Positions 1,901-43,122 of a DNA stretch of 64,000 nucleotides are shown here, in pieces. How positions within the stretch are numbered: the stretch's first letter is position 1; each line of letters begins with the position of its first letter. This DNA is from Entomortierella parvispora E1425. Taxonomy: Eukaryota; Fungi; Mortierellomycota. A program made the translations under genes and the position numbers. The stretch is from positions 682,001-746,000 of the forward strand of contig BQFW01000013.1 of NCBI GenBank assembly GCA_020891255.1. The letters run 5' to 3'. Under the pieces are notes generated by a model that saw only the letters and a list, made by a program, of their open reading frames with translations, made no database searches and was not told the origin of the DNA.

Positions 1901-4085
1901 ATGAACAACTCTTCGCAACAGCAGCCTCAGCTGCAGCAACAGCAACAGCAGCAGGACCAGCACTCGTCTCCTACTGCCGCCAAGCAGGAGCCAGTCATCA
2001 AGCAGGAACCTGCGCAGCTGACTTCCCCTCAGCACACCTTTGCTTCTCTCCAGCAACAGCAGCAGCAGCACTTCCAGTCTGCACCCTACCATGGTCAGCA
2101 GCAGCAGCAGTCAGGTAGTCAGACCCCCTCCTACATTCCTGGGTCGTCAACTGGACCCATGAATGCCTTCTCGGGACTACCACCCAACCCCTACAGCCTT
2201 CATAACCACCTTTTGGGTCTCAGCATGCACGGCAGCGCTTCGCCTTCCTCGGCACAAGGACTTGGTTCTCCACCCTTTGCTCAGTCAGCAGCCTCGGGCA
2301 TCGTCAGCCGTGGAAATAACAGCGGATCGACAACCCCCTCGATGGCCCATGCTTCAGCCCCTTCGTCACCAGTGATGAACAACATGCAGCAGCAGCAGTT
2401 TGGGAACGGTAACGCTCAGTACAGCCACAACGGCGGATCGAGTCTTTACCATCACTCAGCTGTGCAGCATCAACAACACTATCATAACCAGCATTCCTCG
2501 CAGCATCAGCATCAACAGCACCAGCAACATCAACATCAACAACAGCACTCCACCCAAGGTCTGCCCTCCAGCAACTTGGCCTCGGGCTTTTATCCCACAT
2601 CCCCTCCTCACCAACATCAGCAGCAACAATACCAGCAACCACAGCAGACCGCACAACATGTCTCCCACCCTCAGTTTAGCTCTGTGCCCCCAGCGCCTCT
2701 TCGCCAACAGCAATCGCTTCAGTATGCTCCTTTGGTGCCTCCTCTCACGGATGCTCAGTATGCCCAGTATCACCAGCTGCTTGGATCGCCTTTCAGCTCA
2801 GCTGCCTCTACTCCCTATCATTCAAACCAATCGACCCCTTACAGCTCCATGCCTCCGTCCCCTACTCTCGATTACCAGCAGCTTGCAGATCCTAGTCAGG
2901 CTCAAAAGCCCAAGCGTCGCCAAGTGAAGAATGCCTGTGGTAAGTACATTTTTTTTTCGTCAAGGCTCGTTTGATACACCCTTCAGTGCAAGAGGGAGTA
3001 CGATCCAAAAGAACTGTGTCCGAGCGCATGCTTAGACGTGGGACCCGGGCTGCAGTTGTTGGTCAGGACCCACAGTGTGGTTTTTTTCCTTTTCTTTTTC
3101 CTTTTCTTTTTCCTTTTTTTTGGGACAATGTTGGTGCGCTACTCGGGTTGAGAGGTGGAAGTAAGATAAGTGTCATCATAGCAAAGGCGAATCGGTTCGA
3201 CCCAGTGAGTCTAACGGCTGTCCAAACGTGGCAACAACATGGATTGTACCCTGGGAAAAAAAGAAGTGGATAAAAAAATTTGAGTGGGAGGGAAATGGGC
3301 AATATTGAAACTCTAACAGGCAGCCACTGGTGCAAGCAAGATACGCCATATATACATGAGAGCCCGCCAATGTCTCGTCTCTTTCTTTTTCCTTGGATTG
3401 TGGCATGCTACGGTTTATATCCCTCACCTCATACTTCCGCCATTGGCGTCTATGGCGACACGGGACAGACCGGTTGAGCCATCTTTTCAAGTATGGGCGC
3501 CATCGATATCAAAGTATAGACACTAACTCGACTCTTTATTTGTTCATAGTGAACTGTCAAAAGGCATGCAAAAAGTGTGATGAAGGACGACCCTGCACCC
3601 GCTGCATCAAATATGGCCTGACAGATACCTGCGTTGACTCGACAAGAAAGGTGCGCAAAAAGGGTGTTAAGCGTGGCCCTTACAAACGCAGACCACCACC
3701 CACCCAGATCGGATCCGCCTCTGCATCAACGACGCCTACCCTCAGCCATGCCGTCCTTGGTGGACCAACAGGGCCAGCAGGATACATGTCAGAGCCTGTC
3801 ACCGCTTTGAACAGCCCAACGCAATCGCACATGCTCCCCTTCACCTCGTCTGCCATGGGTCACCTGTCTGGACAAATCGACTTTGGGTATGACGCGGGGC
3901 AAGGATCCAGCAACGGAGGAGGCTATCAATTTCAGTCGTCAAGAATGGAGAACAACTACGCGCCTCCATACACCACCAGCTACTCAGGACCAGGCCTTTA
4001 TTCTTCCCCCTATGGAATGACTGGCGGTAACCAGAACGGTGGAAGCACGGGCAACAGTAACGCGCCAAACAACAACCTTTCTTAA
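1901..4085 (+). CDS. Zn(II)2Cys6 transcription factor with long Q/H-rich N-terminus (524 aa); exons 1901-2939, 3550-4085
   Basis: Splicing the 610-bp intron (GTAAGT...CATAG) rebuilds KRRQVKNACVNCQKACKKCDEGRPCTRCIKYGLTDTC, a six-Cys binuclear cluster resembling the Rds2/Ert1/Gsm1 type. Total length 1575 nt is in frame. Confidence 0.93.
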
Positions 4086-4349
4086 AAAAACAATCATATT
4101 TCGAACAACATCCCCACACACCTCCTTCATCTTTTAGCATTGAATCCCACGCACATTGTAATAAAAATTTCGTCCTCTCTTTGGCATGTTGAGTTCTTGA
4201 CCCTTTTTTCTCAACTTCGTTTGTTAGCTCTCCCACCCCTGGGTCGGAATTAGGCTGTCCCATTGCTCGGAAGTCTTCATTTTCTTCCTTCCTTGCTCTC
4301 TTTTTTTCATCCCCTCTTAATTCCTCATTCTAAACTTATACAACTGACT

Positions 4350-7289
4350 ATGGGCACACGAAAGCCCATATGGATGCTCTCACTCTCGATCATTCTCATC
4401 TGGATACTGGCGGTTTTGATAGATGCTCGGCCACGCTCAGAGCAACAGCAGCAGCAGCTCTCGATACCCCATCACAAGAGCCACAGTGAAGATAAACATA
4501 GCAAAGCAAGATCCCAACAGCCGAATCAAAAGAATCGTAAAAAGGACAAGAAAGACGACAAATGCGGAAAATCCAAGAAAGATGACAAGCACAAAAAAAA
4601 CAAGAAAGCGGGCAAGAAAGACAGCAGTGACAAAAAGAAGGGGAAACACAACAAGGGGAGACTACGAACGAAAAAGCACCACTACAAAAAAGGCACAGAC
4701 AAGGCCAAAGGATCCCATGGATCGAAAAGGCCACCACACAAACAAAAAGTTGGCGGTGAAGGAACGCAGCACAGTTTTGAAATCTCGGATATCTCGTGCG
4801 GACCAGGACGGGACGTGATGAAATGTCCTGAGGAGAGACCTTGCTGCTCACAGTGGGGCTACTGTGGGAACGATGGTGATTACTGTGCTGCGGGCTGTCA
4901 GAAAGCTTTTGGTGAGTGCGGTTTTGGTGATGATACAGTCAGGAAGCACAAGCATCGTCATAGGAAACACAAGCCATCCACAAATGCTCAGCATGGATTT
5001 ATCAAAGGAAGACAGAGCAGCCTGCCGGGACAGGACGGTCGACAGTTCAGGATCTCATCCAATATACCCAAGCTACCGCCGAATGGCACGTTGGTCAACA
5101 TTGCGTACTTTCCAGGATGGACTCAATACCGTGGCCAGGGACGAAACAACTGTCATCAACGACCCTACTTACCCTCGGCCATCCCCTGGTCCTCATTGGA
5201 CTATGTCATGTTCGCGTTTGTGTACTTTGACAATGACTATCAGCTATATCCGGCAGACCCTAGCGACGAAGCGCTGTATTTTCAGGTCAACCAATTAAAG
5301 ATGCCCACCAACACACGAGTCATGATATCAATCGGAGGCTGGAGCTTTACACATCCAGAGAGGCGTCGGGAGGAGGACACACGGCATCGATTCGAGAATA
5401 TGATTGCCTCTGTGGATTCAAGGAAGGCGTTCATTGAGAGCTGTATCGAGTTTTGTCAGTTTTATGGATTCGATGGTGTCGATATTGACTATGAGTACCC
5501 CGCTGCCAAGGACCGTGACCTGGTTACAGCTTTGTTCCAAGAGATGAGGGCAGCCATTGATGCAGAGGGGAGCGGATTGGTGCTTTCTCTTGCAGGCGCG
5601 TCTTTTGTGGATGCCATCCAAGGATTCGATCTTGAAAAGGTCGCAGCTGCCGCAGATTTCGTCATGATTATGGCCTATGGTGGGTAGAACAGAAAGAGTG
5701 GAAGCGTCATCAAGGATATCCCTTCAAACCCAGAATTAACATTCCTCCCTACCCCTGAATCCCCTAGATCTGTACGGCTCGGACGACTTGACCCATCTCG
5801 TCAACATCCATACAGCTCTGGTACAGATGCCGACTGAAAACCATGGCGGGCATAGTGTCCAAGGGGCGGTCGAGCTTTACCTCGATCGAGGAGTTCCTCG
5901 TCAGAAGCTTGTCCTTGGGTTGGCTCTCTATGGAAAGACGTTCCTCCTTGCTGATGCTCACCAACAGCAGCCCGGTCGCGCCTTATTCACACAAGGTGGT
6001 GACCCTTCAAGTTGCATTGAGACCCGAGGCGACATGGCTTACAATGAGATCTCGACTCTGCTTCACCCGACCTCGCCTCAGCAACCCGCAGTGGTACCAA
6101 GATGGGATCCGGACGGAAAGGTATTTTATTTCGTCTACGGGCACGGTGACAACAACTGGGTTGGCTACGATGACAGACCAAGTCTAGACCTCAAACTACA
6201 GCTGGTCACGGAAGCTGATTTGGCAGGCGTAATGTGGTGGAGTTTGGATCAGGACTTGGATAGCACCAGTGAAGAGAGCGCTCTTTTTACAAAACAAAAA
6301 CCAAAGAATGAAAAGAAAGGTGGTAAGAGCAAGAACCTTCGCCCTAGAGGCATACTTCAAGTCCCCTTCCTGCCGCCTCAAGCCGAAGAGAGAATTGAAG
6401 AGCCCACAACCAGCACCTCTGTTGTACCAGGCGATGAACTGTCAAGTCAGTTGGCTGGCGCGACTGACCCCTCTATACCCAACGTGCCTTCTCCATCAGA
6501 GCCAACCCAGATTCCTTCTGCTGATTATCTGGTATCAGCCTCGCCGTCCTCGGAAACCGCAGGAAAACCAGTAGAGGGGTCGGTACCAACTTCCTGCCCA
6601 CCCATTCATTCACCTCCATCTGATCTATCTTCTATCTCACTGGATATCCTGGGAAGACCTGGTCTTGTTCCATATATCTCTTCGAAACGAGAACGATGCA
6701 ATATGGTCGTTAATTACCCACACGTCTTGCCTGACACACCAGTTGGTAACGTGGTTATGACTCGCTGTCTTGGTCCAGATCATTGTCCTGAGAGTTGGAG
6801 GGCCTACACCTGCTCATCATCTGGCTGGAGCGATGCCAGTCCTTGCTTTGGTAAGAGAGAAATGAACGGTCTGACTGCAGAGATCTCTTTTTTTTTCTAC
6901 ACCACGTATCGCCTGCAGACTGCTTTACTGAACGGATGTCCCTCCTTGCAATATCCAACCCTTGCATGTTTTTGCCCTTTCCCTTTTTTTTTTCTGCAGC
7001 TAAGTCGCAGTTGTCCCCATCGCTGTACTTTTACGGGGAGCTGGACTTGATCCGTGTATCAGCTCGAGATCGCGATATCAAGGACGTCGCTGGACCGGGT
7101 ACCAGCCCTTCCCTTATCTCTTCCAAGTTGAGCGCCCAGATCGGATCCAAGCGTCCAGAATATATTGAGCATTACATGAAGCTTTCAAAGCTGGAGGAGC
7201 TCATGGCCAAGGCTGAGGAGGCTAAGGCAAAGAAGAAGGTCGCAGGCGGCAAAAGTAAAAAGTCAAGGTCAAAAGCAAAGCTCCCATAA
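4350..7289 (+). CDS. Secreted GH18 chitinase with hevein/CBM18 chitin-binding domain (900 aa); exons 4350-5679, 5768-6850, 7000-7289
   Basis: Signal peptide, CBM18-like CG...CCSQWGYCG...YC..GCQ..FG.C, GH18 catalytic motif FDGVDIDYEYP, MAYD and GVMWWSLDQD. Spliced length 2703 nt is in frame. Confidence 0.93.
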
Positions 7290-33303: not shown

Positions 33304-34252
33304 ATGACCACGGGTAAAAAAAACAAAGAAGAGACTACGCCTGGTTTCCTGCATGAACAACCTTCAACAATTCAGGCTAACGGCGATTCCTTCTTGTCCT
33401 TGTCTCGAGAGTAGCATCCAACCAAACACACACAAAAACGACGGAGGAACTTGACAAGTTCCTCCAGGAGCGTCCTGCACCCGAAGAACTCGTCGAAAAG
33501 AACATCCTCAAAGGTATGTCCTTGACGTTTGGAGTAGTTATGTTCTTGCGCTGATCCTTAACTTGGAACTCAACATCTGATGACCGCCCGTATTTTTGAT
33601 TGTCGTCCTTTAGAGCCTCACGTTGCCCCGGCGTTGCAGGCTCAGGCTGAAGAGCTAAGGCGATCACAACTCGAGGATGCACTCAACACAAAACTGGAGC
33701 ATCGACCCCCGATTTCAGAGCTGGTAGAACACAATATCCTGCATGAGCCCCACGTTGCCCCCACCCTGCAGGCGCAAGCGGATGACTTGAAGAGGTCTCA
33801 GCTTGAAGACACCCTGAACACCAAATTGGAGCACCGTCCACCCGTTTCCGAACTGGTGGAGCACAACATTCTTCATGGTACGAACAGAATACTAACAGGA
33901 CAATGTAGAAATGGAAAAGAGAATGCTGATTACCGCATCTATCTTTGTGGGGCCTAGATCCCACTGTGTCGCCTGCACTTCAAGCCCACGCAGACGAGTT
34001 GAGGCGACAGCAGCTCGAAGACAAGCTGAACGCAAAACTGCAGGATCGACCCTCCCCTGGCACTCTGGTCGAAAAGAACATCCTTGGTAAGCGCAATGCT
34101 TTTTCGCTATGGTGCACGTCACCTAGTCGCGACAAAAACGTGGAAATCCCATAAAGAAGAAAGCGAGGCCTTTTGATCGTAAAGGCCCCGTAGTTTGATT
34201 GATGCTTTTCACATCTTCAGGGCTACGATGCTATTTTCGCCTACAGCCTTGA
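33304..34252 (+). CDS. RPEL-repeat (G-actin-binding) protein with four repeats (~177 aa); exons 33304-33313, 33415-33513, 33614-33877, 33958-34086; last exon uncertain
   Basis: Four L..KL..RP...ELVE.NIL motifs. The final acceptor could be 34220 or 34246. Confidence 0.9.
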
Positions 34253-34651
34253 CGGCAACTTTGCTATTGAGAGAGATAGCCGTGTTTAAGGGTATTTTTG
34301 TAACCATGTCGCAATGGCAGTCTACTTAAGGGTGTATTGTACCTTCCTGGCCATCAACAGCCCAACGGCCAGGGCCACCAACGCGTTTTTGTTTCGTGTC
34401 CTCGGTGTTGATTCTTTTCTTCTCCTCGCTGTCCCGTTGACTCAACCCTTACCACAACACAGACACTTCTGCACTCCATCAGCTTACTCGTCTGTCACCA
34501 CTCAACTTCCCCCGTCAACTCATAACATCGGTATTGCATCTCGAGCTCGCTGCAAGCACCTTTTTTTCCCTTGGGCTGCAATAATCTCTGCAGCTTCTCT
34601 GACCTTGTCTTTCTTGTTTTCCTTTTCATGACAACCTTTATTTACTGTAGT

Positions 34652-37600
34652 ATGGGTGTCGTCAAAGCCTTCGAGACGCTCAAAGACTGTGAGGCAGTCA
34701 AGAGAGTCGACGTCAAGTCCCTTGGTGGGTGCCACATTGATGGCTCAGCCGTCTCTTACATGAGACTCAAATCGACTGAAGGACGTCTCCTCCTACGCGC
34801 TCTGAAGACCCAAGCAAAGAAAGGAACCATTGCTACAACGGCCTCCCTGCTCCCGCTTGGTCGATGGGTTGGAGGACTGTGGTCCTTTCCTGTCCCTGTC
34901 TCGGATTATGGGTCAATCCACTTGGGTATGTCTCCTTTCCACCCGAGCACAGCATCAACCTCTAGCAACAATCCACCGATCAACAATGCTGCCCTGCAAC
35001 TGTCCCCGTTGCCATCCACATCGCCTTCTTTTGGCCCAGTCTCGTCTTTGCAGGATTCAGCCTCAACATCGGATACACTTCCTGACTTCTCTGACCTGCA
35101 TAATGCACGTATGGAAGCTTGGCCGCTCCTTACCAGATCCATGGACCGCATGTTTAATACACATTACAACAAGTCGGCAGACTTTATCCACTACGATGGC
35201 GGACCCACCGTGCAGAAGGCCTTTGCACATGATCGACGGCTGAAGGCCAATGAAAAGGCATCGATCAAGATGTCTGAGCTTCTTGCCTCTACTGACGTAC
35301 GACTTTCTGTGATGGAGTCAAAGTCAACTCTTTCGAACAAACAATTGTCTCGGCTTAAAAGGCACCTCAACTGTGTTGTTTTCCCCCATTGGATGAAATG
35401 CCGTGGGGTGGATCCTCGGGCTACCGTCTTTGTCTCTCGTGAACTTCACACGTCCCATGGATGGAAGTCCCATATATGCCACGGCCAATTTGATATATGT
35501 GCAGGAAAATTGGCTAAAAAGGACCCAAACATCACCGTTGTCACCACTGACAGTGACCTGCTATTCAGTGGAGTCAAAGAGTGTGTCCGAATTCAGCTCA
35601 GGGGCACCAGCTTTTACTCATACCCGATTGAGGGCATCTTAGCCCACTGTAAGCTCCACTCCCATGAGCAATGGGTGGCAGCGGCGGTCGTTAGTCTCAA
35701 CGACTATGATCCTAGTGTTGGGAGGACATCGTTTAAGACTGCGGTCAAGGAGATGGAAAAACTCCACAAAACTTTTCCCCGCAACTGTCGCACCAATCTC
35801 AAAGCCAAGGATTATGTTAAAGAGTTCTGCAAAGGCAAACATGTCGACATCAACTCGGTCGAAAGGTCCTTGGAGAGTTTTGTCGATTTGCTTGAGACCC
35901 CTGTTGAGCAGCTCAATCCGCAAAATGATGTACTCGATGACTCGATACGTAGGATCGTGTACCGAGTGGAGATGCTGACACAACGGTAAGAATGCAATAC
36001 AGAATTGACCTGTTTGCCGGATATGGCACTCATTAAATCAATCATATTCCCTTCGCCACTGCACTAGCTGTCGTTCGTCACGCAGGCGTCCAACAAGCAG
36101 CGAGCCAATCTCATCGTTGGCCACGTTGGAAGTTGACGACCTTCGGCCTGTATCTTTATCAAAGCGAGGAAAGAGGGAACGTCGTCCAGGGTAAGTTCGA
36201 CGAGCCAGAGACTAGCTGGATCGAAAGGCCTGGCACAAAGCTGACAAACTCTCATTATTTCTGCAGATTTCGTGGATACATCTCTGGTCATGTCTTTCGT
36301 CAGAAGGCCTTCGCCCCTGTCTTCACTCATCCAGACAAAAATACAGACCCCATCGGTTGCAAGAACATGACCATTGGTCGGCCTGTTCCTGGAGCTCCGG
36401 TCTTGGTGGCCGATGAAGAAGATGACTTTCCGGACGATGACGATCCCAAGAGTCCCATGCCTGCGCCAGTGCCTGCCCCCGCGCCTTCTCCCGCGTCAGC
36501 TTCTAAGCCTACTCTCAAGCCTGCCCCGGAGAAAACCACAGCGCTTACTACCGGAAAAGCATCCAAAAAGAGGGCAAGAGCAGCTATCGTTTTTGCTCCT
36601 GCCAAGAGGCGTAACCGAGACGCAGAAATGAAACAGCGGGAGGACACAAAGGCAAAGGCAAATGTTCAGCAAGGAGAGGAAGTGCAGGCAGAGGACGAAA
36701 AAAAGCGACGAATGACAAACCCCACCAATATGATTGGCGATGTTGTCGCGTCTCGATGCCAAATGGCCGCTATGAGGCCAGGACGACTAGAATCGTGTCT
36801 ACGATACAGTCTCAAGAACTCATTCCCAATGCTCTCTAAAGAGCAGCACGAGCTTCTATTGAGGCACATCACCGGCATCATTCGCACGTTGGCCAGGGTC
36901 CACTCTGATCTGTTGCGAGAAGGCCTCTTGGTGACAGAGCTTTACATTGCCAGCGTCTTCAAGGAATTCCCAGTCGTGGACGGTGACCTTGGGCAAGATC
37001 ACGCCGGAGAGAGAAGTGGCTTGTTTAACAACATCCTGTTGAAGAAACATCGCGACCCCTTCTTCCAACGGCTTCTGAAGCGACTGCTCAAGTGGGACTG
37101 GGATTCCAACAGCACAAATGCCACAAGTCAAGGCTCCATGGCCGCCGACAAAATTTTTGATGATTATTTCAAGCTCACCCAAAGCCAGCGCAAAGAGGCA
37201 CCTTTCAAAAAAGAGGACCAGGACATTTGCGATAAAACATTTGTTGAACAGTGCGCAAGAACACTCTCGGATATGGTGGGGGAACACGTATTCAAGTACA
37301 CCCTGGAGCTGAAATCGAGAGTAAGCCATCATCGAACAAAACTATCGTTGCTCGAAACTCTGGCAAATTGATCTTTTCGTTTAATAACGTGTTTATTTCG
37401 ATTGCTGGTGGTCCTAGGTCATCCTTCATAACCCTTCTTGGTCTTCATCAGCCCGAGGAAAAAAATTTCTCGACTCCGTCAACGAGAAAGGAGTCTCATT
37501 GATGCACGACCGGTTGAGCCTGCATGCAATAATGAACTGGTTGATTCCTGCTGGAGCCCAGATCAAGATTCTGCCCCAAGTCGGATTCACGGATGGTTTT

Positions 37601-39782
37601 TTTGCATTAACGGAGCGCCAGCTGGTGAGCTGCATCTTGAAAGGCATCCGAGTGGCTAATCCGATGTATCGCACCCTCAACAAGGTGTTCGGGAATAAGG
37701 GAGGGGCGGAAAAAAACACACAGGACGAGGTCGGGAGATTGTCTTTTTTCCTCTTCCTCAACGGCCGCAACACATGTTATCGACAAGGGACCAACGTACT
37801 TTGGGCCAAAGACTACTCAGGCACTTCGTCCTCGAACCCTCTACCGACTTTACAGCAGTTACCGCTCCGAGATATGATGTTCTTCGAGTCTGACGCAATT
37901 GCAGAATTCGAGCAAGCTTCCGAGGGTTTGGGTACCAACGCCAACGCTCCTGGGTATGAAGACCTCAAAAAAATACTCAAGGATGTTATTGGTAAAGGGA
38001 TCCATAGCCCAGAGCATTATCAGCACCTGATTGACATTGCGGCTCCCAAAGTCAAGCGGCCAAAATACGTCCTCACTGGAGACATATCCACCAACGGCTA
38101 CGACCTGCGTGTTATGGCGTACAAGTTGACTGAGAAGAAGCGTAGAGCTCTGCCAGCGGCTTCTTCTACTCCGAACGTTGCTGACCCTGCCACCTCGTCT
38201 CTGTTGGCAATTGAAGTCGGTGCGAATGCCTCTAGCGAATTGTTCACCGATCCTGACCTCATCTCAAGAACACCTGCTCTGGATCTACCTCCATCCGTGG
38301 AAGGGCAGTCATCGAGCGAAATGCTGCCGTCCGTGTCAATGCCAGATGTCGCTTCAACGGCTGCGCCTGCCTGGTCAACAGCCCCTTCCATTGAAGGGTG
38401 GCCATACGTTGCAGAAGCGTTCAACTCCCAAGAGAAAATCAACAAGCTCTACCGAGACAATGCTGGACCTCAGACCGGTATCCGGGTCCTCTGTCTAGAC
38501 CCCGGGGTTGCATGTACAGCCACGGGCACACTTGTCCACTCCAATTATCCAGAAGTCGCCATCAACCTGACTATCCCTCGCGGCTCCCGAGATATCATCG
38601 ACAATAGGTATCGAAAGGAACAGAGTGCTCGTAAGATTAAGGAGGGTATTCCGGATATCGAGGCAAGGCTAGTGGCATTGAAGCCTGTTGAGGCGAGGCT
38701 GGTGCTTGTTAAGCCTACTGACGTCAAGACAACCGATCCCAACAACTTGGACCAAGGTATGAAGGACGTGCCAGTCGCTGCCAGTGTGAAGAAGGACACA
38801 GATTCCTTGAACACAGCGATGAAAGCAGCGGTGCATGAATATGAAGAAACTGTCAAAGCCCATATCATCAGCCAAGCAAAGGAGTCCTCCGCCCTCCGCA
38901 ACTTCTACGGTACCAAGAAGTTCAAGAGGGACAAGTACGACTACCGAGAAGCCATTCGCCATGATCTCGACAAGTCCTCGACGGCTATTCTCAATATGAG
39001 ACACTGCGTTCCTCATCCCCAAGCAACAGATGCCGATCTGTTGTCTATAATCTCTGCTGTGCAAGAGGATTTCGAAGGAGCCAGGCATACAGTCTCAAAG
39101 CTTCCGAGGGGCAAGCAGTTCGACTGGAACTCATATTCTAGAGTCATGGATAATGCAGACCGGTTGCAGGGGGATGAACGCAGCACGTTCTTGGCATCCG
39201 CTAACGCCACTAAGGATCTAGTCAAAACAGCGCAGTCCTTGTACAAGGTTGGCTACATGAGCAAGAATCAACTCTCGGATGAGGCTCGTCGAGAGTTCCT
39301 AGAATCACCACTCATTATCGGAGTTGGCGACGGCGACTATCGCAAGTGGAGGGGGCAGAGTCGGGGATGCGGACAATTGATAAAAAACTTGATCAGACAG
39401 GTAAATAAGTGTTGTCGCTCTTGTGTTGTGTAAAACTATAATGTCGATTCTAACCAAAAAGTTTCTATGGTATGATTAGAAGCGGGACCTCGTGAAGGAT
39501 CTTGCCAGGGGCAACACAAAGTCTCCTGTTATCGAACTGGTCAAAATTCCCGAATTCAGGACCTCAGTCTTTTGCTGCTCGTGTTTATTCCGCGGAAAAG
39601 AGGAAGGCCGATCCATCGTTTGTAAAGAGTGCGACAAGAGTCGCGATCGAGACCATAATTCCGCAACCAACATGTCGAACGCAGTGCTAAACTTACTACG
39701 CGGAGAAGAGTGGCCTGCTCCACTTGATTTTGCAAAAGCAAAGTTCGTCGACAAGTTTTCAACAACGACGCTTGAAGTATGA
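34652..39782 (+). CDS. XPG/FEN1-like (PIN) nuclease fused to Fanzor1 (TnpB-like RuvC) endonuclease, 1598 aa; exons 34652-35985, 36068-36190, 36267-37320, 37418-39400, 39480-39782
   Basis: Four GT-AG introns give a 4797-nt uninterrupted frame. N-terminal motifs: MGV, HIDGS, HYDG, GQFD, TTDSDLL, LNDY. C-terminal motifs: ISTNGY (Fanzor1 TDG-like), LCLDPG, IIGVGDG, IPEFRTS, CCSC...CKEC, RDRDHNSATNM. Confidence 0.88.
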
Positions 39783-39916
39783 CTTCAAGCCTGGGTATCC
39801 CCCTTACGGTGTAAGTCTACAAGCCATTCTGCAAAATCAGTCTTCAATTTCTGTTTACTAATTAAGGGTGACTTATGCTGCGACTAGGTGACAGACACTG
39901 TAGTCTGAATCTGTTC
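39783..39916 (+). ncRNA. Candidate omega-RNA (Fanzor guide scaffold) region
   Basis: Position directly 3' of a Fanzor ORF, where omega-RNAs are known to lie. Short complementary segments seen: CTTAC/GTAAG, CCCTTA/TAAGGG, TAAGTC/GACTTA, CAGAC/GTCTG. Not validated by folding or covariation. Confidence 0.35.
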
Positions 39917-40059: not shown

Positions 40060-40137
40060 TTAGTTGGGGCCATCGATCAAGACGAATGCCTATCCAAGAG
40101 AAAAACGACTTGTGTCAGTTCTCATTCTGCAATCGTT

Positions 40138-40175
<38 letters not shown>

Positions 40176-40611
40176 AAGCACAAGAAAGCAATGCTACTCG
40201 TACGGGTGGTTCCCTGGCACCATAGATGGATGTAATCTTTGGGATCATCTGCATGTAGTGCATCATCTCACTCCAAGGGCAGGCGACGCCGGGGTCCAAG
40301 CACTTGTCCCAGAGCGTTGCCCTGTAGTGGATGATATCCCACATCAGGGAGACCATACACTCAAACACAGCAGGCTCCTCCACGCGCATCTGCCCTATTG
40401 TCTGGTAGACTTTTTTGCCATGGATCAAACTGTCGAGCCCGGTCAATTGGGTGGGCGTCAAGGTGGTGCAGTTGGTCACCTGGGGGATCGCATTCTGGAT
40501 ACACTTATGGCAGTTGGGAGATTGAGCAGAGACAAGGATGGAGAGGAGAGAGAGAAGGGTGAGACAGGACAGGGCGAGTGCCTTGAAGCTGATAAAAGTG
40601 CTTGGACGCAT
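40060..40611 (-). CDS. Small secreted Cys-containing protein (145 aa); exons 40611-40204, 40089-40060
   Basis: Signal peptide ending VSA-Q and 6 Cys in the mature part. GTACGA...TAG intron containing a microsatellite. Confidence 0.8.
40139..40170. repeat. (AC)16 microsatellite
   Basis: Read directly; lies in the intron of the gene above. Confidence 0.95.
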
Positions 40612-41078: not shown

Positions 41079-43122
41079 CTAAGCAGACGCCAGCTTGACG
41101 CTTGCTATCGCTGCTTCATCCAGATCGTCCCTCAAGGTCAGGTTGAGTCCAGAGCGTCGGAGGCATTCCTTGGCCTCTGCAACTTGGTTGCCCTGTAGAC
41201 GCACAACAATTGGCACCTTGATCTTGGGCCCCTCTGTCAGGGCCGTCACCATTCCTTCTGCGATCGTGAGGCAACTGGCAATGCCACCAAAGATGTTCAC
41301 GAGGATCGTCTTGACATTCTTGTCCTCTGTGAGAATCTTGAACGCTTGACCGACTTGCTTGGACGTGACTCCACCACCGACATCCAGAAAATTAGCGGGT
41401 GAAGCGCCATGTAGCTTGATAATGTCCATCGTGGCCAATGCCAGACCTGCTCCATTCACTAGATATGACAACCATTGGCCCGAGTATACACAATTAATGT
41501 CGCGCACAAAGGCAATATGCCAGGGCAGTCGGAGCTCAAGAGGACTTACCAAGGCATCCAATGTTTCCCTCCATACCAACGTAGTTAAGACCGCAATCTT
41601 CTGCCTCAACTTCGCGTGGATTCTCCTCAGTGGTGTCACGCATCACCTGTAGCTCTGGGTGCTTGAATGCTGCGTTGTCATCGAAGGAGATCTTTGCATC
41701 GAAGCAAACCACTATAGGCCAAATATAACACAAGATCAGTCGGGGTTGTTGAAGTCAAAGGTGCATCGGTTGGAAGGCACTGTACCCTGATTCTGAGGTG
41801 TAAGACCAAAGGGGTTGATCTCCACCTGCACTGCATCCACATCCAAAAACAGCTGGTAGAGGTTCTGCATCTGCTCAGAGGCTTCAGCAACGGCTTTGCC
41901 TTTGAACCCAAGTTTCATGGCCATATCGAGAGTTTGTTTTTCTGTTGGACCAGAATCGATGTCGATGACGCTCTGTATGTTCATATAAGTCATCGTTTAG
42001 GTAGATGTCGTCGCAAAATTGTATCTACACCTCTCTTGTTGTCGATTATTGCAGTAATTCATTACCTTAAAAATGTGATCAGGGTTGGTGGCAGCAACTT
42101 GTTCAATATCAACACCTCCATCAGGACTGCCGACCATAACAGGGCCACCGCTGTCGCGATCCATCAGAATGGCAAAGTATGTTTCCTTTGCAATGTCCAA
42201 TGCCTCTGCGATCATCACCTATTACCAATAGCATCGTTATATAAGACGAATGTTCATGAGTCAATCGAGAAGCCCGGTGCTGAGTATATTACCTTGGAAA
42301 CGAGAACGCCATCTTCACCTGTTTGCTTTGTCTTCAGTTTGTATCCAAGCATCTGCTCGACCAAATAAGGCACCTTTGTGGGACTGAAAAGAGGCAACGG
42401 CAACATAAGTAAAGGTCCCGTTCATCCTGCTTGTATGTACCGTTTGCACTTACTCCTTTGTCAGATGGACACCGCTCTTGAGACCGCTTGAGAATTCTCC
42501 TTTGCCTCTTCCTCCAGCGTGAATTTGGGCCTTGATTACAATTTCGTGCGCCTCTACAACGTTCATACAGAAAGACTCCTCGCAGTTAGAAAAAAAAATG
42601 CTCTCGAAGATTTCCCTTGCACTTGTACTCCCAAAGAAACATATGTCTCGTGGGTGATATGATGCCATGCAAGGCAGACAGAGCATGGCCCGTGAGAATA
42701 ATGAAAAGAAAGAGCAATTTCCTAGTCCTTTTTTCTCGGATAAAAGAGGCCCCAGAAACACAGACGTCAATTCCGAAGCAATCCTTGAGCTAAAAATGAC
42801 CTCATGCAACGTACTTAATCCAACGGCGGCATTCTTGGCCTGATCGACAGTCTCGGCAATGGCAAAGCGCTGGACGTTGATGTTGTGCTTGGCCATCAAC
42901 TGCTTGGATTGATACTCGTGAAGGTTCAAGTGCCGAATCTGGCTGGCCATTAATGCTTTCGCTGGCAGCAGCGGGAGCTTTAATTTTTTTTGTGGAGACA
43001 AAGTCAACGGAATGCATGTCAATAAAAATCCCACGCCTTTCCATTACGCTCATGAGTAGCGACTGGGGGTCAAAGTGGCAATGCCTTGGTACCTGTCGTT
43101 GCATGAGAGCTGACTGCGACAT
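41079..43122 (-). CDS. LSC2: Succinyl-CoA ligase beta subunit, mitochondrial (421 aa, 8 exons); resembles the GDP-forming SUCLG2 type
   Basis: Motifs [75 protein letters not shown] and IVVRLQG. Spliced length 1266 nt is in frame. Confidence 0.96.

Follow-up and report, generated by a model that had tools for sequence, protein, structure and literature searches.

A transposon-borne gene of Entomortierella parvispora predicted to join a FEN1/EXO1/XPG-type nuclease to a Fanzor

A 64,000-nucleotide stretch of contig BQFW01000013.1 from Entomortierella parvispora E1425 (the window; coordinates below count from its first letter) holds a five-exon gene in which a nuclease domain of the FEN1/EXO1/XPG type precedes a body of the Fanzor/TnpB type. 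The gene sits in a TA-flanked element of 5791 base pairs (34110-39900), and the explanation that best accounts for the evidence as a whole, to which we give a probability of about three in four, is a non-autonomous transposon carrying a 5' nuclease-Fanzor fusion gene. The comparisons described below support a Fanzor with a built-in 5' nuclease as the probable novelty here; the carriage of Fanzor1 proteins as Mariner/Tc1 cargo was already known.

Results

Two nuclease parts are encoded by one gene

Inspection of the list of open reading frames (ORFs) reveals four long ORFs and one short ORF that follow one another on the + strand from 34.6 to 39.8 kb. The earlier note had joined these through five exons and GT-AG introns into one intact frame of 1598 amino acids (aa), and this structure was reproduced exactly: the joined exons come to 4797 nucleotides (nt), that is 1598 codons plus a TGA, with zero internal stops. 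Such a run is not a product of chance, since (61/64)^1598 is approximately 1e-33. The fusion was tested by comparison with relatives. The loci used most are L001 (Mortierella claussenii), L002, L003 and L007, which share ~45% protein identity with the window protein, and the more distant L004, L005 and L006, at 22-30% identity.

All features of the gene lie on the + strand. Exon 1 (34652..35985) encodes the 5' nuclease core (aa 1-445), which is interrupted around aa 89-137 by a disordered insert. Intron 1 (35986..36067) opens with the donor GTAAGAAT, which overlaps an in-frame TAA; were it not spliced out, this TAA would leave an ORF with the XPG part only. Exon 2 (36068..36190) is a short linker exon of 41 codons, and intron 2 (36191..36266) reads GTAAGT...CAG, its acceptor CAG/ATTTC (the slash marks the junction) being kept in the window and in L001-L003. 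Exon 3 (36267..37320) passes from an acidic, proline-rich linker through a basic stretch resembling a nuclear localisation signal (NLS) to a conserved helical region; intron 3 (37321..37417), GTAAGC...TAG, corresponds to a gap of ~60-80 nt at the same protein position in L002 and L003. Exon 4 (37418..39400) carries the Fanzor body, comprising a presumed REC/WED region, RuvC-I with D1198, a helical insert and the canonical RuvC-II site GVGDGD. Intron 4 (39401..39479), GTAAAT...TAG, lies just 5' of the motif E-[FWY]-R-T-S, with an intron at the same place in L002-L006, and exon 5 (39480..39782) supplies the alternative RuvC-II Glu E1523, the TS motif, a C4 zinc finger (TNB), RuvC-III with D1556 and the stop. 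The four introns measure 82, 76, 97 and 79 nt, with GTAAG or GTAAA donors and AG acceptors.

The same ORFs could be taken for two neighbouring genes, an XPG-like nuclease of 445 aa that stops at the TAA (35987-35989) and a separate Fanzor downstream, the single frame then being an artefact of splice choice. In the window and in L001-L003 that TAA does coincide exactly with the end of exon 1, gene callers of the prokaryote type report each exon as an ORF of its own, and no spliced form was found among the contigs of four sequencing runs carrying the same species label. Inspection of the junctions favours a single gene instead. The TAA is embedded in the donor GTAAGAAT, which is kept in the window and in L001-L003, and the GAAT following it is conserved too, as fits a donor. 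Exon 1 ends in phase 2 in all four of these loci, and exon 2, which has no in-frame ATG, keeps a length divisible by three in each (123 nt in the window; 255, 210 and 252 nt in the others). In L001-L003 the coding frame of exon 2 contains 0 stops and each other frame 4-7; in the shorter exon of the window the other two frames contain 1 and 0, and the frame test is not discriminating there. Protein conservation restarts exactly at the exon 3 acceptor CAG/ATTTC, a point well before the ORF has its first Met.

Relatives bear on the same question. The order of N-terminal domain, linker, body and last exon is collinear in 8/8 loci long enough to judge. In L004, L005 and L006 a single unbroken ORF (1211, 1196 and 1168 aa, respectively) runs from the XPG-like domain through the Fanzor body as far as the RuvC-I region, the last intron being the sole intron of these loci, and GenBank holds fused gene models (KAF9117569.1, KAK3825262.1 and KAK3845023.1) from Mortierella sp. 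14UC, Benniella sp. and Linnemannia gamsii. We regard the fusion of the N-terminal nuclease and the Fanzor body in one gene, judged from these sequences, as established at the gene level, much as the earlier note had proposed; the division into two genes is very improbable.

The ATG of the MGV start has A at -3 and G at +4, and an MGV start is kept in more than 30 relatives. An upstream in-frame ATG at 34628-34630, 8 codons earlier, stands in a poorer Kozak context (T at -3). Two short proteins with the N-terminal domain only, P0026 and P0028, come from contigs that stop right after the ORF.

The linker between the two nucleases (about aa 446-840) spans ~400 aa and holds the acidic/Pro-rich stretch, the NLS-like KKRARA...KRRNR from aa 586 and the conserved helical region. 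Exon 3 is conserved collinearly in all relatives, distant ORFs included, and contains no recognisable family in Pfam or Atlas. Intron 2 of L002 (4780-4840) holds a long (CT)n run, from which we conclude that the linker introns are free to vary.

The N-terminal domain shares the fold of FEN1, EXO1 and XPG

Each motif of the FEN1/XPG series that had been read in the first ~445 aa is present: the MGV start, H-I-D30-G-S, Y-D182-G-G, G-Q-F-D281, T-D300-S-D302 and N-D351-Y. The motif recorded earlier as 'xxD' stands in respect of its Asp (D281), with the qualification that it reads GQFD here and GEAD in the wider family. Assigning the domain required a family profile and a structure model, because Pfam finds no XPG family on the single protein. 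With the window protein alone, Pfam returned only the C-terminal TNB, the thresholds of XPG_N and XPG_I not being reached, and a single-sequence search of the PDB with the N-terminal domain gave no match. An exhaustive HMMER search with the domain yielded 73 relatives, several of which match Pfam XPG_I just below threshold. When a 36-member profile of the domain was compared with the PDB, the significant matches were XPG-family structures only, led by Rad2/XPG (6.7e-13), EXO1 (3e-12) and FEN1 (1.3e-11) and followed by XPG and GEN1.

Structure prediction leads to the same family. The AlphaFold2 (AF2) model of the domain has a mean confidence (predicted local distance difference test, pLDDT) of 88 and a predicted template modelling score of 0.83, the disordered insert at 89-137 (~50 aa) excepted. 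Foldseek matched the model to FEN1 at probability 1.00 and E 1e-7, with T5 exonuclease (5hmm, 5hnk) among the fold matches. VIA placed human EXO1 first at Z 20.4 (278 residues aligned), followed by FEN1 at Z 19.8 and XPG/Rad2 at Z 15-18, and the top Swiss-Prot models matching the domain were all FEN1. Profile, AF2 model and Foldseek search all match FEN1/EXO1/XPG, in agreement with the fold that the motifs had led one to expect. By fold and profile, aa 1-445 are supported as a complete FEN1/EXO1/XPG catalytic core, with nuclease activity as a prediction.

The likeness to FEN1, EXO1 and XPG (Rad2) includes the core fold, the N and I regions, the helical arch, the H2TH-like region and the MG start, and it extends to six of the seven active-site carboxylates, D30, D182, D281, D300, D302 and D351. 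The seven in human FEN1 are D34, D86, E158, E160, D179, D181 and D233, and the E158 equivalent is Q279. K189 is invariant and R196 occurs in at least 90% of the sequences, at +7 and +14 from D182; this equals the spacing of D86, K93 and R100 in FEN1, where the latter two are the Lys and Arg of the helical gateway. In contrast to those enzymes, the window clade has Gln at the first Glu of E-x-E and carries the ~50-aa disordered insert, and the fusion protein lacks a PCNA-binding or mismatch-repair-partner tail, is transposon-borne and is joined to a second nuclease. The Gln is found as GQFD or GQMD in the window protein and its seven closest relatives, while most of the more distant aligned members keep Glu (GEAD, GESD, GETD).

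This replacement of one of seven carboxylates may weaken or alter the 5' nuclease of the window clade. Taken further, it would make the N-terminal domain of this clade a non-cutting module that binds or clamps a DNA structure for the Fanzor, for example a flap, a nick or the edge of an R-loop. Each of the seven close relatives of the window copy has GQFD or GQMD where the wider family has GEAD, and a substitution that is fixed rather than random points to a selected functional change. The other six carboxylates are kept, however, together with K189 and R196, the counterparts of K93 and R100 in FEN1, and the ratio of nonsynonymous to synonymous substitution (dN/dS) of the domain, ~0.30, is the same as that of the Fanzor part. 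We consider a domain that has lost cutting to be unlikely.

A second alternative concerns the substrate. The 5' nuclease might act on RNA, either trimming or freeing a guide from the spliced mRNA or removing the RNA strand from an RNA-DNA hybrid. RNases occur among PIN-like and FEN-like folds, FEN1/Rad27 is reported to be able to cleave R-loop RNA (PMC10201435), and a eukaryotic guide would presumably need release from an RNA polymerase II transcript. On the other hand, the enzymes nearest in structure (EXO1, FEN1 and XPG, Z 15-20) act on DNA, the domain retains the helical arch and Lys/Arg pair that characterise DNA 5' nucleases, and no guide RNA was identified. A role on RNA seems to us quite improbable.

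The C-terminal part is related to Fanzor and TnpB

The C-terminal part (about aa 840-1598) shows S-T-N-G at ~aa 1068, LCL-D1198-PG (RuvC-I), GVGDGD at 1472-1477, E1523-F-R-T-S, CxxC...CxxC at 1530-1548 and R-D1556-H-N (RuvC-III). The TNG motif, the three RuvC motifs and the zinc finger reported in the earlier note were all recovered; the canonical RuvC-II position reads Gly, and E1523 is the relocated Glu. Exon 5 matches Pfam PF07282 (Cas12f1-like_TNB) at 1.5e-8, with 35.1 bits against a cut-off of 26.3, and E-[FW]-R-T-S, CC-x-C, C-x-x-C and D-R-D-H-N are invariant in 5/5 homologous last exons.

Fanzor and TnpB proteins are defined by the chain D-x(n)-[TS][TS]-x-x-C4-x(5,50)-RD, with 125-275 residues from D to TS (PMC3627910). 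The window protein contains this chain as D1198, T1526-S1527, the C4 finger and R1555-D1556, with a D-to-TS spacing of 327 residues that exceeds the definition because of the helical insert. All Fanzors are reported to have Gly or Pro at the canonical RuvC-II position and an alternative Glu ~45 residues away (PMC10530073); here the Gly falls in GVGDGD and the relocated Glu, as assigned by motif, is the invariant E1523, 46-49 residues on.

Structural comparison may point in the same direction. The top VIA matches of the exon 4 model, made without exon 5, were SpuFz1 structures (9cey, 9ceu, 8gkh) at Z 6.9-7.2 over model residues 324-661, followed by PpFz1 at Z 6.3 and then by Cas12 enzymes; a Z of ~7 is modest, and values of Z <8 fall within the VIA background range. 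The Atlas neighbours of exon 4 are Cas12 RuvC and TNB clusters. A single-sequence PDB search with exon 4 gave no match, and wider protein searches with the Fanzor body, as single sequence and as profile, returned family members only, with no Fanzor lacking the N-terminal nuclease among them.

From its motifs, the C-terminal part is supported as a RuvC nuclease of the Fanzor/TnpB type, and RNA-guided cleavage is predicted for it. The body appears to form a very diverged clade, and its tentative assignment to Fanzor1 draws on the structural matches to SpuFz1 and PpFz1 and on the Mariner/Tc1 association, an association reported for Fanzor1c (PMC10530073). With Fanzor1 proteins such as SpuFz1 and PpFz1 (PMC10432273, PMC10530073, PMC11423790, PMC3627910) the fusion family shares the D...[TS][TS]-x-x-C4...RD chain, the RuvC-II Gly with a Glu ~47 residues later, introns, an NLS-like stretch, the status of Mariner/Tc1 cargo with a TA duplication, and autonomous as well as non-autonomous forms. 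It differs in an N-terminal extension of ~840 aa that contains a whole second nuclease, in a protein about twice the size of SpuFz1, and in a body too diverged for sequence searches to reach described Fanzors.

The gene lies inside mariner-type transposon ends

The gene is enclosed by inverted repeats and TA dinucleotides. A TA stands directly outside both window ends (34108..34109 on the left, 39901..39902 on the right). Between them lie the left terminal inverted repeat (34110..34140, +), TGGTGCACGTCACCTAGTCGC..., a 5' non-coding region (34141..34651, +) that presumably holds the promoter and 5' untranslated region (UTR) and has no coding homology to relatives, the fusion gene, a 3' non-coding region (39783..39872, +) and the right terminal inverted repeat (39873..39900, -), ...GCGACTAGGTGACAGACACTG. 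The 31-nt inverted repeat arms were detected at 34107-34137 and 39873-39903 with a 13-nt perfect core, and the ends read TA/TGGTGCAC... and ...CACTG/TA.

L001 and L002 share this end sequence on the left, and L002 and L003 carry its reverse complement on the right. Aligned together, the six ends from the four loci give the consensus TA/YRGTGCACGTCAYCTAG..., with TA outside 5/6. Homology between loci starts at the left end, and identity between L002 and L003 drops from 71-73% to 54% just past the right end, which confirms the right boundary.

Inside these inverted ends, L001-L003 carry an extra ORF for a 560-aa transposase between the left end and the fusion gene (L003:175-1857; L002:~900-2630; L001:~4030-5150). 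Its motifs HDESIF, FDNSSNH and NFIEMYW supply D243, D343 and E479, a DD135E arrangement. Pfam gives weak hits only (DDE_3, HTH_33), and the Atlas neighbours with a named Pfam family are all DDE_3 (IS630/Tc1/mariner type), the nearest scoring 0.91-0.95. The D-to-E spacing is unusually long, with a Cys-rich insert between the second Asp and the Glu. The window copy contains no such ORF, and nothing alike occurs elsewhere in the window; since the relatives L001-L003 carry a transposase and this copy does not, we class it as non-autonomous. On the sequence evidence, 34110-39900 is read as a non-autonomous DNA transposon of the IS630/Tc1/mariner type, belonging to an ordinary cut-and-paste family, with the fusion gene as its only gene. 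An earlier suggestion that the system works without a transposase does not hold, given the inverted repeats and TA around the gene and the DD135E transposase within the same ends in L001-L003.

Several known elements offer points of comparison. Mariner/Tc1 elements that carry Fanzor1, with or without a transposase, and make TA duplications have been described (PMC3627910, PMC10530073). In the Mariner element PGv-1 (Bao & Jurka 2013, PMC3627910), the transposase, a GIY-YIG endonuclease and Fanzor1 are three distinct proteins, so that a second nuclease accompanies Fanzor1 and a Mariner-type transposase in one element; there, however, the second nuclease is a separate GIY-YIG ORF, whereas in the present family it has a FEN/EXO1 fold and belongs to the same polypeptide. 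A eukaryotic lineage encoding its own nuclease beside the transposase is also found among DNA transposons, namely in AcademX (PMC10045372). AcademX elements differ from the fusion element in their transposase superfamily, in duplications of 3-4 bp and in having no Fanzor. The AcademX nuclease is said to be of the XPG type (reportedly noted by Kojima in 2020).

The 3' non-coding region

By analogy with Fanzor/TnpB (PMC10530073), the 3' non-coding region is the place where an omega-RNA scaffold would be expected. Inspection of this region reveals a conserved post-stop block (window 39810-39890; L002:8618-8917; L003:8115-8401) with a donor-like GTAAG and a branch-point-like ACTAAT/ACTGAT. The motifs of the block would fit a 3' UTR intron or a portion of a guide-RNA region; for the conserved part just before the right end, the inverted repeat is probably a better explanation than a 3' UTR intron. 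The order after the stop is alike in three loci: TTACGG, GTAAG, ACTAAT/ACTGAT, a run of T and, immediately within the right inverted repeat, a TAG. The stop codon of the fusion gene is straddled by a perfect 9-bp hairpin (GCTTGAAGT / ACTTCAAGC) at 39770-39790, and L002 and L003 have a similar TTCAAAGC after their stop.

The fusion recurs across Mortierellaceae and both parts are under selection in relatives

The closest relatives come from Mortierellaceae and soil metagenomes. A scan of metagenome collections returned one short locus, L007, the relative alignments being too diverged for pattern scans of collections; a viral scan returned no relative. The fusion was found across Mortierellaceae, and the recurring family that the earlier note had asked about does exist: as far as these sequences tell, the layout defines a family spread through Mortierellaceae, whose autonomous members also carry the DD135E transposase. 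Between L002 and L003, dN/dS is ~0.30, equal for the N-terminal domain and the Fanzor exons, which shows purifying selection on both nuclease parts in relatives.

Other copies were sought in runs with the same species label. Run X3, from another strain, contains a copy 92% identical over window 34400-37593, which has lost 20 nt at 35261 and a single nucleotide at each of 36232 and 36717 and breaks off at 37593 into unrelated sequence. Besides this copy, the four same-label runs hold short conserved bits only, and most other runs of that label contain next to none of the sampled words. This pattern hints at presence/absence variation of the element among strains; no empty site was seen in them.

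The window copy could in principle be an intact-looking but silent relic, non-autonomous, untranscribed and with no present function. It lacks a transposase, no RNA run holds it, and the related copy in the other strain is frameshifted and truncated. Its 1598-codon frame, four intact introns, complete set of catalytic motifs and preserved ends speak instead for recent selection or copying, and a relic would concern the window copy alone, not the family. We judge a relic to be unlikely.

Discussion

A possible route from guided cut to recombination

How a gene of this kind might serve its element can be sketched as follows. A transposase supplied in trans would move the element. The Fanzor part would be loaded with RNA transcribed across the right end of the element and would cut sites that lack the element, that is, the emptied donor site or an empty allele. 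The tethered 5' nuclease would then resect or trim the 5' strand at the break, and homologous recombination with the element-holding copy would be favoured, leading to retention or spread of the element. Expression, a guide RNA, both activities and their coupling are all assumed in this scheme of guided cut and 5' processing, and we offer it as a tentative proposal. In its most specific form the protein would be a natural RNA-guided cut-and-resect enzyme that breaks element-free sites, starts 5' resection with its EXO1/FEN1-type half and achieves homing by forced recombination; this we hold to be doubtful at present.

A number of results count against the reading of the element as a transposon with a working 5' nuclease-Fanzor fusion. 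In addition to the Gln at position 279, the missing spliced form in the contigs of the four same-label runs and the modest VIA scores already mentioned, confidence in the AF2 model of exon 4 is low (pLDDT 64), and the profile of the Fanzor body reached no solved Fanzor in the PDB by sequence. In the 3' non-coding region of the window copy, no omega-RNA was found by Rfam match or by folding (minimum free energy z-score -0.47), and conservation of the region is no higher than that of the introns. The copy in the other strain is degraded. Engineering provides a further caution: TREX1, TREX2 and T5 exonuclease fused to MmeFz2, a Fanzor2, all lowered its activity (PMC12923547), so that a fusion is not automatically beneficial.

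Relation to described and engineered systems

Within the full text of the Fanzor literature open to searching, which lies outside subscription journals, no paper pairs a Fanzor with a nuclease of the XPG/FEN1/EXO1 type, and the architecture thus appears undescribed there, as the earlier note had supposed. The main Fanzor papers (PMC10432273, PMC10530073, PMC11423790, PMC3627910) report N-terminal variability, NLSs and a RuvC insertion domain, and no fused nuclease; a supplementary table of Saito et al. (PMC10432273) lists a different Mortierella Fanzor.

The nearest functional likeness is to engineered proteins, TREX2-Cas9 (PMC13370227) and the MmeFz2 fusions (PMC12923547), in which an end-processing nuclease is likewise tethered to an RNA-guided cutter. 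T5 exonuclease, used in the latter, belongs to the same FEN superfamily as the N-terminal domain of the fusion. In contrast to these constructs, the fusion family arose in nature, is conserved, evolves under purifying selection and has a linker of ~400 aa. It is a natural counterpart of engineered Cas and Fanzor exonuclease fusions, whose results have been mixed (PMC12923547), and its linker and domain order could guide designs.

The natural role of Fanzors, the RNA-guided nucleases of eukaryotes, is unsettled. A conserved, selected fusion to a nuclease of the EXO1/FEN1 class points to events after the cut, and the family makes the idea of homing by recombination directly testable. A cut-and-resect enzyme, if it proves true, would be the first eukaryotic RNA-guided nuclease to carry its own module for the choice of repair pathway. 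Proteins of this family are stored publicly as 'hypothetical protein' or '5'-3' exonuclease' and can now be named.

Neighbouring genes

The element is flanked on one side by an RPEL-repeat gene and on the other by a small ORF of the opposite strand, with a CoA-ligase gene further on. Just before the element, the RPEL-repeat gene (33580-34154, +; Pfam RPEL 4e-14) comes to its end; a GTAAGC at 34087 is a possible further donor, and the element may lie in an intron or in the 3' region of this gene. The 173-aa ORF just downstream of the element (40090-40611, -) matches no Pfam family and starts like a signal peptide; beside it, at ~40110-40140, lies a (CA)n/(TG)n microsatellite. The exon at 41079-41639 (-) is of the succinyl-CoA-ligase type (Pfam Ligase_CoA 3e-27) and belongs to an ordinary host gene.

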